Shown: one piece after another, positions 41,467 through 59,479 of the stretch
How positions within the stretch are numbered: position 1 is the stretch's first letter
Layout of the letters: the number at the start of each line of letters is the position of its first letter
From: Rhodosorus marinus CCMP1338
Taxonomy: Eukaryota; Plantae; Rhodophyta
DNA length: 64,000 nucleotides
NCBI GenBank assembly: GCA_029953675.1
Contig: JAMWBK010000007.1
Span: forward strand, 806,001-870,000
Direction of reading: 5' to 3'
Program-made: the position numbers and the translations under genes
Notes under the pieces: model-generated
Databases searched by the model: none
What the model was told of the DNA's origin: nothing
What the model saw: the letters and a program-made list of their open reading frames with translations, nothing else

Positions 41467-43642
41467 TCAGCCCTTAACGCAGAGAATCTGACGCAGGGTG
41501 TACTTGATCTCGACGAGATCATCTTGCGCGGCCATAACCTTATCGATTGGTTTGTAGGCCATTGGAGTTTCGTCTATAACATCTATGTCCTTTCTGCACT
41601 CTACTTGGCTCGTCGCTCGCATATGATCTTCGACAGAAAATCGCCGCTTCGCTTCCGATCGGGACATCAACCGTCCTAGGACAAATTGCCGTTGAACACA
41701 TGTCACTCGTCAGCAACAGACAACTCTTTTCCTCCAAAAGTACCTAAATCACTTACCTGCTCCGTGACTGCAGCTATTGTACGACTCCGCGTTCCCCTTT
41801 CCTTGCACAATGAAAGACTTTGCACCCATCGATCCGGGGATAATTCCATACCGACCTGCAGATCAGCGAAACAGGAGACAAAAAAAAACAACGTCGCTTT
41901 TCGTGTTCAATTTCCCCTCCAATCAAAGCAGAACAATGAAGCCGTCGGCCAGCCACTTCTCCCCTCACCTTTCTCGGCACAGACCGCGCCCTTCCGCGTG
42001 ATCAACAGATCCTCGCCAAAATGAAACTCTCGGTTAACATAGTTGTGATGACAATCCACTGCCAAAAGATCAGCCTGAAATCCCCTTAGTGACTCTGGAA
42101 CGCTCTCTCGAAGGGCCTTCAGAAAACTATTCATCATCACCTCTCTATTCACCTTTGCAAACTTTTGCGCCCATCTGGCAGTGTCAGCAAAAAATAAACA
42201 TAAAAAGTTCGAATATTAGTCAAATTCAAAATATAGAGGACAGGCTGTCATCAAATATCGACAGCCCGTCATGTCATTTCAAAGCCAGCTCGTGCCGTTG
42301 GGCAAGGAAGACGCTTTTCCTGTCTGAGCATGCGCTGAACGACTGATATTTCTATTCTCTCCATTGTTTCGATCTTTTCCAGCCCTTTCGACGTCGTTTT
42401 CAGTCCCGGTTTTTCTTGACTTGTGGTCCAAAATCTGGGGGCAAACGCGTCGACTGATGGTCCGTGGGGACAGTGGAGGGTTCAGGGCAAAGCCTCCAAA
42501 TCGTCTTTGTAAGCTTCCGGAGATAAAATCTGAGCTGAGATAATATGAACCCTCTGTATGCTAGTCCAGGGTCTGAAAGCATCTGCTTCCTGAGTGGTCT
42601 TTCCCTGCTCACTGCTGCTGGCCCTGGCTGTCTGGACTCCCTACCCCATGGAAACCGTGCCTGCACGTTGATGGCGTTGAAAAGAAGGAATTCTGGAGAG
42701 AACCACAGCCTGCAGCCTCGTATGCATCCCCGGATGGCGGTGATCGAATGTAGAGGTTTTTTTGGTTGGACGGGTTTGGTGGCTTACCCGACCGCGCGTA
42801 GGTAGTCGTCAAAGTGGTCAGAACCTGCCTTGAAGTAGGCGAGATCCTTGTTCGGAAGATCGTGAACGTGCTTTCTCATGTCCTTCTTCGCAAGCTCTAT
42901 GAAGTACATTCCAATACGGTTGCCAACGCCTCGCGAGCCTGAGTGGAGCATTAGCCAGATCGAATCGGTCTCATCGAGACACATTTCGACGAAGTGGTTT
43001 CCGGTGCCCAGGGTGCCAAGGTGGTTGACGAGATTCCCCTTGGCAATTCGAGGGTGCTTAGCAGCGATTCTCGTAAAACCCGAGAACAGCTCATTCCTAA
43101 ACCTGAGGCCAACTTCTGCTGGCTCATCTGGAAAAGTCCACATATAACCAAGGCTTAGCGAGTCTTCATTTCAGGTTATGCTTGTGACTAGCTTCCGTAC
43201 CTCCCCGCCAGGCCCCCTTGTCCCCGCGCCCTCCACCGCTGCTACGTCCGTGGGGAATGGCTCTCTCCACAGCGTATCGAATCGTCTTCAGAGAGTCCGG
43301 CATGTCCACAGCCTTGAGGCTAGTTCGCACAGCCATCATTCCGCATCCAAGGTCAACTCCAACCGCCGCAGGAATGATCGCCGCCTTAGTAGGAATCACA
43401 GAGCCCACCGTGGCGCCAATACCCCAGTGACAATCCGGCATCACCGCAATCCCCTTCTCGTGTATAATCGGCAACGCCGCCGTCTGTTTCAACTGACTCC
43501 TCGCGACGCCTTCGACGGGCAAACCTTCAGTCCACATCTTCAACGGAACTTTCCCCGTTCCAGCGTTAACCACACTATGCACATGACGAAGGCCCAAACC
43601 CCCGAATACTTTTCTCCTAATCATCGTTCCCTGCCAAAGCAC
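41467..43642 (-). CDS. rtcB: RNA-splicing/repair ligase RtcB, bacterial (E. coli-like) type, 4 introns, presequence-like N-terminus
   Basis: MPDCHWGIGATVGSVIPT, VGVDLGCG, LGTLGTGNHFVE, MLHSGSRG, DCHHNYV, TRKGA, IIPGSMG, SCSHGAG|R (His codon at 41764-41766), DETPMAYK, ILCVKG*. Confidence 0.95.
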
Positions 43643-45406
43643 TCCCGCACAAGTACCACTCCGGACGCGGCGGAGTACAAGAATAGGAGTGGGCTTGAAT
43701 TGAGCAAAAAACCAACCCCTTCCCTGTACCGCTCGGTACTGCCCTTGACAAACCCGAAAACGCTTCAGCGCCTAGCTAGATAACCAGTACCTAGTTCACA
43801 CCCTCTCCCTCGCTCTACTTTGTCCCGATCAACCAGATACCCGACATGATAGCTAGCTCCCCAACCACCAGAACCACGGTGAAGAAGACGGACTGCGTAT
43901 GGGCAGTTGCTTCAACAATACAACCCCAACACCTGTACGGGCCAAATGTAGCTCACCACCCGTTCACTTGTAAGGGTAAGAAGAACCACCCGCCGACACC
44001 TCTTAGCTCCAAGTACACGGCTGATGAAGAAGACCAAATTCCTTTTCTGTAGCTGCTTCAACATTTTTGCAACCCAGAACTCTTCTCACCCCGATCACCA
44101 ATAAAGAAGAAAGGACATCCGGCGTGATTGATTAGCTCCTAAGCAGTGGCGAAGAAGGTCAACCTGCTGCGTATCTGCACCATTTGCTTGCGCCCGTGAA
44201 GAAGATATTGCTATGTGAAACCCGTGTGAGCCGGATGGAGGTCATTCAGTCCATAGCACGGAGGAAGAACACCCGATGTGACTTGTTCACGCCTTGGGAA
44301 AAGGTGATGATGAACTGCGTATCTTCAGCACTTCCTTCTGCGCAGATGTACTTCGCTGATGCATTATTTCGACTTGGACGAGCAGCAAGTAGATCAACAG
44401 AGTCGCTTTGCAGGTAGCTGCATGAATCCCAAATCTTCTTAAGCTTCATAAAGGTCTGTTGCTCCGACGATTGTCGCCATGACTCCGTGGAAAAGACTAC
44501 ATGACTGTCGTTTGTTTTGGTCTGTCAAGGTTGTAGCCGAGTTGAGCAAGGACATGTCGTCACCGAAGGCACATAGAGGTAGAGCGGATGTGAAAACAAG
44601 GGGAAAGGACAAAAGACGCGACCGGACGACAAGCTCCCACTGTTCAAGGGTAGATCATCCTCCACAGCAACAAACTACACTGAGGGTGTGAGAATTCTTT
44701 TCGGTCTCGACGAGATTGGAGAAAACAACTGTGTGAATGAACATGAGGGAGACGACGAGTTTCAGCCGGGTAACCAGTCGCCTACCAACTGGCACCCTTA
44801 CCATCCTTGAAAACCATACATCCAAACGAGTTGCAAAGATGGATATGAGATCCCAAAGTTTCGCGAACGCCATGAGAAGTAGTCTGTTCGTGCCTGGCCG
44901 ATAGCCGCGTTCGGCAGCACGCCCGGTTTGGGATGCTTTCGAGTTGTAATAGACAAAACATCGGACAAGGTAAAAGCATACAACCAACCGCTACATGCAA
45001 TAAACTACCGAAAGAAACGTCCAGACGATGACTGGATTGGAGGCCAGCCGAGAAGATACTGCTCAAGGAACAGACTACATCTCTTTCGCTTCGCCGTGAG
45101 TAATGGTTTTGGTTTGTCCATCCAATGCTTCCTCAAAGGTCTTCCTGTTCACTTCGTTTTCCGGTGCCCTTCCAGTTCCTGGGCATACTCGGATTTTAGC
45201 CTCTACATCACGTGCAGTACTTGAATGCGAGCGAATCTGTACCTCGACTCTCATGTAGAGAAGACGCCGGATTCACAGGCGTGCTGTCGATGGACTAGGT
45301 CTCCTCGACTCCTTAAACATTCACTATCTGGACATTCGTTTTTACCTTAACAGTCCACACGTCTCTGTACAAGAAGGGTTAGTGCTGGCATTCTGTTTTG
45401 ACGGAT

Positions 45407-47206
45407 TCATTCGCCTTTGATGTTAAGAATAGGCGTGAGAGTATGTACAATACTACAGAGCTTTCCCTGTGCTCTCATGACTGCGGCTATGTTCTTGTAC
45501 GACGATGGCGCAGTCTCCATCCACCGACTGCTCTTCCTGTATTCAACAGGTCTATCAGCTTTCTCTAGTGCTCTCGAAAAATCTGCGTAGGATGCCTGAC
45601 GAGATTTGCTTCTCGTACGTCCTAAGATGAACAACACAGAGCGGGAAAGGATTGAGTGAGCATCGGTGTCGAGCTCCATTTCGCATCCAGAATGAGACGC
45701 GCTCAAGATCACATCTCTTGGAGACTTGGAAGTCTGTTTCCAGGGCCGCTCGAGGACGACGTGGTGTCATGACATTATCGGCTGCAAAAGATCTAGGGCA
45801 ATCAGCTAACTGGTTCGGTATCTGTAGCTTACCTACACCACTGCTACAGCTTTCGAACGACTTGTCGTGGCCAGTGCCTTTCACAACGTAAGATTTGTCA
45901 GTCATAGTCCCTGCGACGATTCCCAGCTCGTCTGAGGTGATCGAACATGTACAAGAACGGAGACAGAGCCATCGATAAAGGATCAATTGTATCCAGTTCT
46001 GATCCAAAGTTGGGAACAAGTACCATACCCAGTTTGGCACTTATTGCACCTCTTCTCATAACGTAGAGCTCACTCCCCATGTGCGTCTCCTTCGACACAA
46101 AGTTGTGGGGACAATCGAGGACCTCAAGTTGCCCCTTGAAATTTCTGAAACTTGACGAAACGTGCTGTCGGAGACAATTCACGACGTTTCTCAGGATCAG
46201 TTCTCTGTTGAACTTTGCGTACTTGTTTGCCCAGCTGGAACACGGACACCAAGCCATGTTAGAAAACTCATACGGGCACATGGGGTCAGCTTGCATTTCC
46301 AACTTACCGGTCGGCGGCCAGGTAGTATTTGAAGCTTTTCGAGCTTTCTTCGATATACGCCAAGTTGACGTTTGGAAGACTGAAGGCATTGACGCCCATC
46401 TCCTTCCTCGCGACCGAAGTAAAATATTCTCCTAGCTTTCGACCGGGTTTCCTCGATCCGGTGTGCACCATAATCCAGATGTTCTCGAGTTCGTCCGAGC
46501 TCATCTCAACGAAGTGATCAGGGAGTCCGAGTGTACCCAGTTGTTGCTCTGGTTGCTCTATGACGGCCTCCGGGTCCCGCTTCCCGATCCTAGTGTACTC
46601 TGAGGCCAGGTGTTTATTGTACAAGCTCTGGACACTATCTGGAACTTTACGTGCGCAAACGAAAAACCCACAACGTTAGTATTGATTCGAACGTTGGAAT
46701 ACTTGCAACGTTGGGATCGATGACCTACCGGATGACCACGATCCATAGTCCTCCGATAAGTGCTTTAGGGAAGAGTGACCATGCGGAACAGATTCCTGTA
46801 TCGCCAATCGGAGTTCCTTTAAGCTCTCTGGAAGGTCAGCGTACTTTAAGCTCGTCTTCCTAGCCGTGATCCCGCATCCTATGTCCAACCCAACGACCGC
46901 AGGAATGACTGCTCCGCTCAAAGGCACCACGACACCAGTCGCGGACATGAAACCAAAGTTGCAGTTCGGCATCGCCGCCATGCCGTGCTGGCTTATTTTC
47001 GGATGCGTAGCCATCAGTTGCAGTTGGTGTTTGGGATCCAAGAAACGGTCCTCAACGGGAAGCTCCCTCGTAAACTTATATAGCCTCGTCTTCACCGCCT
47101 CCCGCGGCTCCACTCGGGGCCATAAGATCCTGTCCGAAAACGATCTCATCGAAGATCGAATCCATCCAGATCTTCTAGCCTGCAGGAGCTTAGCACCTGC
47201 ATCCAT
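45407..47206 (-). CDS. Divergent RtcB paralog with catalytic His replaced by Ser (predicted pseudo-ligase), 4 introns
   Basis: MPNCNFG, VGLDIGCG, LGTLGLPDHFVE, MVHTGSR, DCPHNFV, MRRGA, VAGTMT, SCSSGV|GR (Ser codon AGT at 45840-45842), ETAPSSYK, ILNIKGE*. Exons are open and intron positions and phases match the first copy. Confidence 0.9.
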
Positions 47207-48307
47207 CAGTACCTTTTTCTTACTCTACCACTCTCAATAAATACGAGATCCTGGCATCCGATCATCCCAGAGAAGTCACCTCCCATCCTCATTTCCCTTG
47301 TAGTCTCCAAGGCCGTCGAATCAAATATCCTCATCGAACCCTAAACAAAGAAAATAATTGATATTAATCCAATTATTGACTATTACGTGTCCTTTTGTTG
47401 AAACTTATCCAATGCTAACATAAAATTTTGTGTCAGCTAAATTCTTATCGAATAGTAAGTAACTAAATGCTCTCGGTTTTTTTATACCACAATATTAAAT
47501 AGTTTAAAAATAATGGATATAAATAAATAGAATTTTTGTTTCAAATATTTTAGACCAATTATTTTGCGGTATACAACGGGACGAGGCACGATTAGACCAA
47601 TTAAAAGGAGTTTTATATAGAAAAGTCTCATAATATTTTTATTTTAAACTATTCATCAAGAATAATGTACCAATAAATACTGAGTTAGTGTAAGCATGGT
47701 TCGGAAAGATGGATGGCGTCCTTTTTCTTATTTTTTGAGAGGAGTACCTGAGGGTAAGAAGCAGTTACAGAACGAAAGACCATAACTAAGTCCATACTAT
47801 ACGAAATTTGAACCTCCTCCCCGGATTTGCTCTGAAAATCCTCCGCTTGGACAGCGTGGTCGGTGATAGCTTTTCACCAAAGGCAAAAGGTACGTCGTTG
47901 CGTATGAACTCACCCTTTTATAGCTCTTTTGGCAGCTTCACGCACCGATACCCGGGTTCTTCTTCCAAACTCCAAACAGAATCCGTCTCGGACTAAAAGC
48001 AACCCACCAGGCCATCGTCTACCATGGTACCGCCTGAACTCCGAGCGGGAATGCATAAAGAACAAGCGGAAACTCCCAAAGGCTCTGTGGAAGCCGCGAT
48101 GACATCTTCGCCACCATGTTGAAGCCCTCATGCTATGCTCCAAGATATTCCCTCAGCCAAGGCGCATGTGTCAGAACATTTCCTTGTCGTGGTCGACGTG
48201 GACAGGTGCGTCGGGCAGTTCTATATTTGTGATAGTTTGGGTGTTGAAGAGTGTGGAAAATCCACTAGGCTAGTGAACCTTCTGGGCCATCTTAGCCCCT
48301 CTGAGAG

Positions 48308-57962: not shown

Positions 57963-58726
57963 GACTTCACGGCGCCTGTGACACAGCCGGCAACGAGAAC
58001 TGCCCTTGCGGCTTGGAACGCGTGTGGTTGACTTTGAGCTCACACACGTAAGATCTAGCGTTCGCAACAGCGTACAGTGCTCGCTCGAAGAAGAACGAAC
58101 ATAGGGAAGAGAGGGGGAGAGATGAGAGAGAGATGGAGTACTCGGAATTCTTCTTTTTGTTCTCCGCTACGACTGGCGACTCTGGCATTTGGAAGAGCAC
58201 TGACAATAGCACAAGTAGAAAACTAGGACAGCTCCAACCCAGAGACCAGAGACCCTTAGACAAATAGGAGGCGAGAACTAACGGGCCAGGGAGTATCGGA
58301 TGAAGGTAAACATGGAAGTTCCAGACATCCAAGCAATAGAGCTTCGAAGGCCGCTCTCAGGAAGCCGGTTCTGAATTTCTGGGCTGATAGGTGTTAGAAA
58401 CGTTAATAATAAGCCTTTTGACTCAAATCCAGACCTCAAACAAGACACTGCCGATCGGGGCGTAAAGTAGAGATGAAAATCCACGTGACGCATCATCGCT
58501 GGCTTGCTGAGAGAACATACTTGCCAGGTCCTACAGGGGACAGCCTCTTCAATCGAAGATTTAGCAGATATCCATCCATTCAGACGTTGCCTAGGAGTTC
58601 ACGACATTGCCTGCTTGCCACTAGGCAATCACAGTCGAACGCCACCGTAACAACAAATATGTCAAAATAGCGCTTCGCCCTCCTTGCTTAACAACAACCC
58701 TAACGGACGGGAATAAAAAATGTATA

Positions 58727-58798
58727 TTCCCCCGCCGGGAATCGAACCCGGGCCAACGGTGTGAGAGACCGCTATCCTAACCACTAGACTACGAAGGA
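58727..58798 (-). tRNA. tRNA-Glu (CTC)
   Basis: 72 nt, TCCTTCGTAGTCTAGTGGTTAGGATAGCGGTCTCTCACACCGTTGGCCCGGGTTCGATTCCCGGCGGGGGAA. Anticodon loop CT-CTC-AC, canonical D and T loops, downstream T6. Confidence 0.97.
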
Positions 58799-59479
58799 AT
58801 TAGGAACGACGGGAATATTATCAATCTATATATTATAATTTCCTAACAAGATTTTTCGAGTTTCTGATTGCGTCGAAACTATTCAAACAATCATCGTGTA
58901 GATCCGCAGCCTTCCTACGATTTCATTCGTCAAATTGTCTTGAATAACGAAATTATTTGTGTGACCCTCCAATAAGTAGTTTGCGAGGCCGCTGTCGTAA
59001 GGATGGGGATGCGGGATGCAGGATGATGGAAGACCATAAAGTTGACGGTAAGTAACCTGTATAAAAGTAAATGTATGGGGTAGAATATAGAAGGGTATAT
59101 TTTGTAAGCAAATCCCTCCATAGTTGGAATTTATTTTTAAATTTTGTGGAACATGGATCGTGCAAACAAAGTATTATATTAAGAGTAAGAATTGGAATAG
59201 TTTGTTTTGAAAGAAATGCGAGCGATTCCGGCGGTTAGGTTTTGATGGGTTTTCTGATTGTGTTATGGGATTTCCGTCTGGAGAGCACGGAACACGTACG
59301 TAAGCCCGCCTCCCCCCCGCCGACCCGTTTTGCCTGTTGCGTATGAGAAGACTAACAGACGCTCCAAGACCCACCAAACACCCCACCAAACAGGTGCTCC
59401 TCGCGGATCACCTCCATCACCTACACAAAAGTTTCCGGACATGAACAGACGGAGGGGGACATTTACCCTCCTCTACGCA

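Follow-up and report, generated by a model that had tools for sequence, protein, structure and literature searches.

RtcB is, to our knowledge, the only known family of 3'-phosphate/5'-OH RNA ligases, and the Asp of its MPDxH motif probably hydrogen-bonds the histidine that serves as nucleophile. We analysed two bacterial-type RtcB genes arranged in tandem, both on the minus strand, in nuclear DNA of Rhodosorus marinus; "the window" below is the whole 64-kb stretch of this DNA, and positions given with no contig name refer to it. One gene (copy 1) is canonical, and the other (copy 2) encodes a paralog without that histidine. We conclude, with a probability of about 0.72, that copy 2 is expressed and kept by selection although, unlike its canonical neighbour and paralog, it is ligase-dead. 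Residue numbers follow E. coli RtcB unless stated otherwise.

The nucleophilic histidine of RtcB has been called invariant (PMC8668186). Cys78, His185 and His281 ligate Mn1, and Asp75, Cys78 and His168 ligate Mn2; in P. horikoshii RtcB, Lys480 (E. coli K407) contacts the guanine O6, Glu206 (E171) contacts N1 and N2, Asn202 (N167) and Asn330 (N282) form hydrogen bonds with GTP, the former to the oxygen bridging the alpha and beta phosphates and the latter to the gamma-phosphate, and an off-pathway His234-GMP adduct is possible (PMC9745838). When GMP is bound to human RTCB, Glu230, Ser409 and Lys504 contact its base, the backbone of Ala430 and Gly431 its ribose, and Asn226 and His428 its phosphate (PMC8668186). 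The E. coli H337A mutant forms no RtcB-GMP and performs no ligation, retaining only a slow GTP-independent cyclic phosphodiesterase activity (PMC3458531). Asn202/N167 also anchors the 5'-OH nucleophile: E. coli N167A guanylylates a 3'-phosphate 70-fold more slowly and does not seal DNAppG to a 5'-OH strand, de-guanylylating it instead, and Arg189 holds the 5'-OH strand (PMC8051266).

Active site of copy 2

Both proteins are full-length members of the family. The Pfam RtcB profile (PF01139; cut-off 27 bits) scored copy 2 at 280.9 bits over profile positions 1-426 of 426 and copy 1 at 406.6 bits, and phmmer matched copy 2 to RtcB/RTCB chains of the PDB at 1e-14 to 1e-16. An AlphaFold2 model of copy 2, built on a 73-sequence alignment, reached a mean predicted local distance difference test (pLDDT) score of 87.4 and a predicted template modelling (pTM) score of 0.88, with uncertainty confined to the first ~40 residues and two loops. 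These first ~40 residues form an N-terminal extension, basic and Ser-rich, encoded by exon 1 and modelled at low confidence. Foldseek aligned the model with 8odo, 8odp, 4dwq and 7p3b (human RTCB and P. horikoshii RtcB) at template modelling (TM) scores of 0.71-0.75, and copy 2 is predicted to have the RtcB fold.

The codon at the nucleophile position is AGT (Ser) in copy 2 and CAC (His) in copy 1, giving the motif SCSSGVGR versus SCSHGAGR, as an initial annotation made from the DNA letters had stated. This Ser aligned to His428 of human RTCB with HMMER and to His337 of E. coli RtcB (MG1655 sequence) with MAFFT. The motif changes listed in the same annotation (MPDCH>MPNCN, GNHF>PDHF, HHNY>PHNF, RKGA>RRGA and PGSMG>AGTMT) are all present. 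Copy 2 carries the substitutions D48N, H50N, G166P, N167D, S186T, H280P, K299R, P313A, S315T, G317T, H337S and A339V. The change HHNY>PHNF carries no weight, because canonical members of the family vary freely at position 280 (H, P, A, S, Q, T).

The other changes fall on strongly conserved positions. Across our canonical reference set of 407-408 His-bearing RtcBs, position 337 is His in 407/407, 167 is Asn in 404/404, 299 is Lys in 407/407, 48 is Asp in 375/376, 50 is His in 376/376, 313 is Pro in 404/407 and 339 is Ala in 401/407. We defined 67 constrained positions as those at least 95% conserved across 408 canonical RtcBs; copy 2 keeps 51 of them and changes 16, and copy 1 changes none.

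Copy 2 retains D75, C78, H168, E171, H185, R189, H281, N282, R298, S320, R341, Y380-K381 and K407, in agreement with the earlier claim that the Asp, Cys and His metal ligands and the HN and YK motifs persist. All five metal ligands (D75, C78, H168, H185, H281) are present both in copy 2 and in its ortholog from a sister strain, and the guanine contacts E171, S320 and K407 (human Glu230, Ser409 and Lys504) are kept three out of three, the counterpart of Ser409 in the HMMER alignment being the Ser of the KSY motif in copy 2. The annotation had also described GTP/GMP-pocket motifs as altered; the rebuilding is limited to the nucleophile and phosphate side, the guanine contacts being kept. In copy 2 the two side chains in contact with the guanylate phosphate (His337 and Asn167) are gone and the loops around them are rebuilt; it retains the metal centre, the guanine-specific pocket and Arg189, which holds the 5'-OH strand.

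Deprived of His337, copy 2 should be unable to form the RtcB-(His)-GMP phosphoramidate, and deprived of Asn167 it would be poorly equipped for the final attack by the 5'-OH; because both residues are gone, it should not ligate RNA via the RtcB pathway. Since E. coli H337A shows neither RtcB-GMP formation nor ligation, we infer that copy 2 is incapable of both. Less firmly, binding of RNA ends, of a transition metal and of either a guanine nucleotide or a 3'-ppG end may persist. Because the metal site and guanine pocket are kept, as is the basic groove, two roles would fit: a GTP-independent hydrolase acting on RNA 3' ends, as a 2',3'-cyclic phosphodiesterase or in removing 3'-ppG caps after abortive RtcB reactions, or a protein without catalysis that binds RNA ends or partners copy 1. 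A further role suggested in the initial annotation, sealing of pre-activated 3'-ppG ends, is disfavoured because of N167D, since the E. coli N167A mutant does not join strands and instead de-guanylylates DNAppG (PMC8051266).

Expression, selection and origin of the tandem pair

We assessed expression in MMETSP/JGI transcript assemblies from another Rhodosorus strain, the sister strain named above. Its copy 2 product (P0121; 444 aa, MDAGAK start) is 87.8% identical to copy 2, and introns 1-4 are removed at the modelled junctions. The open exons and four canonical introns described earlier (84, 73, 97 and 211 nt, each GT...AG) are thus confirmed by the gene model and by this spliced product. The JGI transcript contig L001 supplied the sister-strain nucleotides, in which the nucleophile-position codon is AGC, also Ser. 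The initial annotation had held a sequencing error at this codon to be unlikely; with an independent strain reading Ser too, an assembly error at 45840-45842 is very unlikely, and we regard sequencing or assembly error as ruled out. The rebuilt active-site residues, including Ser337, are all identical in both strains, and only R345K and A348Q differ.

The coding sequences of copy 2 and its ortholog (1335 nt) are of equal length, with 0 indels and no stop. Nei-Gojobori (NG86) counts between the two strains gave 61 nonsynonymous and 67 synonymous differences, with nonsynonymous (dN) and synonymous (dS) rates of 0.061 and 0.268 and a dN/dS of 0.229, and neutrality was rejected (binomial p = 1.4e-13). 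For the RtcB domain only, dN/dS was 0.19, and the N-terminus evolved fast (10 nonsynonymous versus 2 synonymous differences). Intron 4 differed between the strains by 14% mismatches and 38 gap positions, and the 3' flank was 79% identical, with indels. These results clearly indicate that copy 2 is intact, spliced, expressed and under purifying selection. The earlier view of a maintained gene therefore stood, as did its expectations of spliced transcripts (P0121, L001) and of an ortholog conserving the His-to-Ser change, and an ordinary pseudogene is ruled out by the dN/dS, the lack of indels and the spliced transcripts.

A subtler form of loss, in which copy 2 has no function and is slowly decaying, either as a young pseudogene or under relaxed selection, is very improbable. 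Its dN/dS is 3.5 times that of copy 1 (0.063 against the sister-strain ortholog L002, which matches all four copy 1 splice junctions), identity to copy 1 has fallen to 41%, 16/67 invariant positions are changed, and an isoform keeping intron 4 (P0002 and P0123, sister strain) truncates the protein, all of which decay would explain. It would not explain an open reading frame (ORF) that is intact and equally long in both strains despite a dS of 0.27, with the indel count and neutrality test given above, the 51/67 invariant positions kept, including all metal ligands, splice sites that are intact and used, or a likely ortholog in another eukaryote (P0356, described below; 33% identity) that is still an open, expressed ORF.

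Assembled transcripts of the sister Rhodosorus (L001:1165-1351) and of the eukaryote carrying P0356 (L005 ~1264-1395) both keep intron 4, which truncates the protein just past the SCSS motif in each; these may be unspliced pre-mRNAs, or the retention may be regulated. In the sister strain, the copy 2 transcript L001 includes a ~1.25 kb 3' region, which ends where the copy 1 transcript L002 starts (window ~44130-44160). The two abut within ~15 nt with no sequence in common, as could result if transcription of the paralogs is coupled or reads through.

The gene structures of the two copies correspond closely. Introns 2, 3 and 4 match in phase and occupy identical alignment columns, at E. coli residues 237, 307 and 340, intron 1 has the same phase one column apart in a gapped stretch, and exons 3 and 4 measure 206 and 99 nt in both. 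The copy 1 ortholog of Porphyridium purpureum (P0125) is intronless and has no tandem partner. The shared intron positions and phases, together with the tandem layout, point to a duplication within red algae, and more narrowly to a tandem duplication in the Rhodosorus (Stylonematophyceae) lineage that followed the gain of introns. Copy 1 intron 2 (42175-42787, minus strand) is 613 nt long, and the copy 2 intron at the same site is 73 nt long. Coordinates are collected in Table 1.

Table 1 Features of the tandem RtcB genes (window positions)
Feature	Position	Strand	Description
RtcB copy 2 (His-less paralog; NCBI locus NDN08_004451)	45407..47206	-	444 aa; ATG at 47206, TGA at 45409-45407
Copy 2 exon 1	46729..47206	-	MPNCN (D48N, H50N), DIGC (metal ligands D75, C78)
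Copy 2 exon 2	46308..46644	-	QQLGTLGLPDHFVE (G166P, N167D; H168 and E171 kept), HTGSR (H185, S186T, R189)
Copy 2 exon 3	46029..46234	-	CPHNF (H281 and N282 kept), MRRGA (K299R); 206 nt
Copy 2 exon 4	45833..45931	-	GIVAGTMTDKS (P313A, S315T, G317T; S320 kept), SCSSGVG; 99 nt
Copy 2 exon 5	45407..45621	-	R341, R345K, YK, terminal IKGE (K407 kept)
Copy 2 nucleophile-position codon	45840..45842	-	AGT = Ser; equivalent to E. coli H337, P. horikoshii H404, human H428
Copy 2 intron 4	45622..45832	-	211 nt, phase 1; directly after the SCSSGVG motif
RtcB copy 1 (canonical; NDN08_004450)	41467..43624	-	425 aa, 5 exons
Copy 1 exons	43624-43201, 43127-42788, 42174-41969, 41855-41757, 41675-41467	-	Junctions confirmed by sister-strain transcript L002

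The predicted copy 2 protein is 100% identical to the deposited KAJ8903343.1 outside the 5' end. The deposited model (459 aa) has a more upstream start and treats the region of ATG 47206 as intronic (window 47206-47350); between 47249 and 46729, transcripts of the sister strain align collinearly with the genome and favour the MDAGAK start and a protein of 444 aa. Directly upstream of copy 2, positions 47330-47700 are strongly AT-rich (the rest of the window being ~48% GC) and could represent a promoter or what is left of a repeat. No RNA-repair-related genes were found beside the RtcB pair in the window, whose sole tRNA gene is a tRNA-Glu with anticodon CTC predicted by ARAGORN (58726-58799, minus strand).

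His-less RtcBs in other lineages

We searched 1.84 billion representative sequences with copy 2 using phmmer and listed the best 150 of 5,450 matches. Among the matches listed, no sequence lay between 87% and 40% identity to copy 2, and three of the 150 (P0356, P0257 and P0391) also lack the histidine. P0356, on contig L005 of JGI 3300016877, is a transcript of a second eukaryote in culture. It reads SCSSDAG and then enters an intron that was kept at the position of intron 4; once this is spliced out, the ORF runs on to ...SVNC. It also carries N167S, E171Q, H281F and K407N, and is likely an ortholog of copy 2. P0257 (L004:8001-9236) is bacterial, on a metagenome contig of typical bacterial gene density, and has the motif SCASGCGR with the Ser codon TCG; its closest relative in GTDB representative genomes is 53% identical. 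No RtcB, RtcA or archease gene was found in the 8 kb upstream of P0257, and the contig ends ~100 bases downstream of the gene. P0391, also bacterial and like P0257 a singleton, has Ala at the His position and a shortened C-terminus. A profile search with the His-less alignment found no new His-less RtcB beyond these three, a GTDB genome scan with P0257 returned 80 loci of which 80 have His, and a JGI metagenome scan yielded one distant canonical RtcB and no new His-less member. His-less RtcBs are rare, but copy 2 is not unique.

The lineages without the histidine deviate at overlapping positions. P0257 and P0391 have replacements of the D48, P313, S315 and A339 type in common with copy 2; positions 48, 313 and 337 are altered in all four His-less lineages (copy 2 and the three matches), and positions 50, 167, 186, 315, 317 and 339 in three of four. 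Among the 67 invariant positions, the overlap of their deviations gave pairwise hypergeometric p values of 0.0004-0.03. The substitutions common to P0257 and P0391 prompted us to consider a separate transfer of a bacterial His-less RtcB as the source of copy 2; we judged this unlikely because of the shared intron positions and phases, the tandem layout and the differing Ser codons (AGY versus TCG).

Because D48N, P313A and H337S replacements recur in the red-algal clade and in unrelated bacteria, His-less RtcBs might form a convergently evolved functional class in which, once covalent guanylylation was lost, the guanine pocket and binuclear metal centre took on a reaction other than ligation at RNA 3' ends; we hold this to be unlikely. 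One candidate reaction would be 3'-ppG cap hydrolysis, proofreading the abortive products of the neighbouring ligase (a counterpart of aprataxin in the RtcB world), and another would be GTP-independent hydrolysis of cyclic phosphates.

The Ser itself could suggest that copy 2 has altered rather than dead chemistry, still transferring nucleotides with Ser337 or another residue as nucleophile, or from a different activated donor. His-to-Ser, a two-base change from CAY, occurs in copy 2, P0356 and P0257, with Ser codon families that differ (AGY versus TCG), which suggests that Ser is favoured rather than random; moreover, the metal site, guanine contacts and N282 of copy 2 are intact. A Ser-O-GMP phosphodiester would, however, be far less reactive toward a 3'-phosphate than the His-N phosphoramidate, as general chemistry has it. 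The phosphate contact N167 and the nucleophile surround (D48, H50, P313, S315, G317 and A339) are all changed, and P0391 has Ala, not Ser. We consider continued nucleotidyl transfer improbable, even though the PhoRtcB His234-GMP adduct shows that other pocket residues can be guanylylated (PMC9745838).

Whether the maintained function involves catalysis at all bears on a second alternative, in which copy 2 is purely non-catalytic, serving as partner or regulator of copy 1 or as an RNA-end or GTP-binding scaffold. The tandem arrangement, with the copy 2 transcript ending about where the copy 1 transcript starts, is what a partner would lead one to expect, and P0356 has lost even a metal ligand. 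Against this, both Rhodosorus strains strictly keep five metal ligands that a scaffold would not obviously need, and the 8 kb upstream of P0257 hold no RtcB neighbour (its contig ending ~100 bases downstream). Bacterial RtcB is monomeric. It acts stand-alone (PMC8668186), although dead paralogs that activate a live partner are known in other enzyme families (PMC5201418 and PMC3663545). We regard the purely non-catalytic role as doubtful, while giving it some credence.

Interpretation and comparison with known systems

Several points weigh against our reading of copy 2 as a maintained, expressed, ligase-dead paralog. Loss of ligation is argued by analogy with Ala mutants of E. coli RtcB, and Ser could in principle act as a nucleophile. 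The expression evidence comes from the sister strain, not the sequenced strain. Constraint on copy 2 is ~3.5 times weaker than on copy 1 (Fisher p = 3.5e-5), that is, relaxed. P0356 has lost the ligand H281 (H281F) and guanine contacts (E171Q, K407N); were it an ortholog, neither the metal pocket nor the guanine pocket would be universally required for the function of the clade. Because both copies carry N-terminal extensions, both may be organellar, a targeting that composition alone suggests. Lastly, neighbour-joining trees (Kimura distances, 200 bootstraps) united copy 1, its ortholog, Porphyridium P0125 and the eukaryotic transcript P0126 in a 98.5% clade, and did not put copy 2 beside copy 1: its long branch joined other long branches, pairing with P0356 at 48-78% and grouping all His-less sequences at 70%. 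This position probably results from long-branch attraction and convergence; because sequence phylogeny leaves copy 2 unplaced, the duplication scenario rests on gene structure and synteny.

The members of the clade formed by copy 1, P0125 and P0126 all have N-terminal extensions, whose sequence suggests organelle targeting. Bacterial-type RtcB loci of red algae and eukaryotes were located at 41467-43624 of the window (minus strand), L007:6001-7383 and L006:3-1427, and copy 1 is ~65% identical to proteobacterial and myxobacterial RtcBs; gene transfer and an endosymbiont are the candidate sources of this red-algal enzyme. That some red algae carry bacterial-type RtcB with N-terminal extensions bears on tRNA splicing or organellar RNA repair. 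According to a 2026 review, RTCB has been lost from red algae (PMC13247085); this statement concerns the eukaryotic/archaeal-type enzyme, and the genes described here are of bacterial type. Full-text literature searches found no published His-less or pseudo-RtcB and no publication linking RtcB to red algae.

Copy 2 amounts to a natural separation-of-function variant, in which the metal and guanine sites are kept and the nucleophile surround is rebuilt. It could reveal a non-ligase activity of the RtcB fold, such as RNA-end hydrolysis or de-capping, or a regulatory partner of an RNA repair ligase. The rebuilding of the same positions in independent lineages delineates a guanylylation module, several positions of which (D48, H50, P313, S315, G317 and A339) are scarcely mentioned in the RtcB literature consulted for residue roles. 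The reach is narrow, as eukaryotic His-less paralogs are so far confined to Rhodosorus and one other cultured eukaryote.

A close described relative is the E. coli-type RtcB, with which copy 2 shares the Pfam family, ~39% identity, the predicted fold, the five metal ligands, E171, K407, Arg189, R298 and R341. Copy 2 differs from it in having Ser for His337 and Asp for Asn167, in replacements of D48, H50, K299, P313, S315, G317 and A339, and in being a nuclear eukaryotic gene with four spliceosomal introns and an N-terminal extension. It naturally combines the side-chain losses of the E. coli mutants H337A and N167A from the Shuman laboratory; unlike those mutants, it is natural, under purifying selection, bears ~14 more changes at invariant sites, and has Ser and Asp instead of Ala.

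Diverged RtcB paralogs are also represented by Myxococcus xanthus RtcB1-3 and E. coli RtcB2 (RtcB2-PrfH), which presumably keep the nucleophilic His. Unlike copy 2, these are described as active GTP-dependent ligases or cappers, engaged in DNA/RNA capping and ribosome repair (PMC10630183, PMC9304027 and PMC13166195).

Two systems outside the family offer functional parallels. The trypanosomatid AdoMetDC prozyme and deoxyhypusine synthase (DHS) paralog have, like copy 2, lost a catalytic residue and are duplicates selectively kept alongside an active copy (PMC5201418 and PMC3663545); copy 2 differs in keeping its full metal centre, so that residual or new catalysis would be possible, and by analogy with the prozymes a partner role is a candidate. 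Aprataxin is a functional analogy only: it removes abortive ligation intermediates, including RtcB-made DNAppG caps (PMC4499129), and has a fold unrelated to RtcB (HIT superfamily) and a covalent His mechanism. By the same analogy, a His-less RtcB endowed with a guanine pocket and a metal site could carry out aprataxin-like de-capping.

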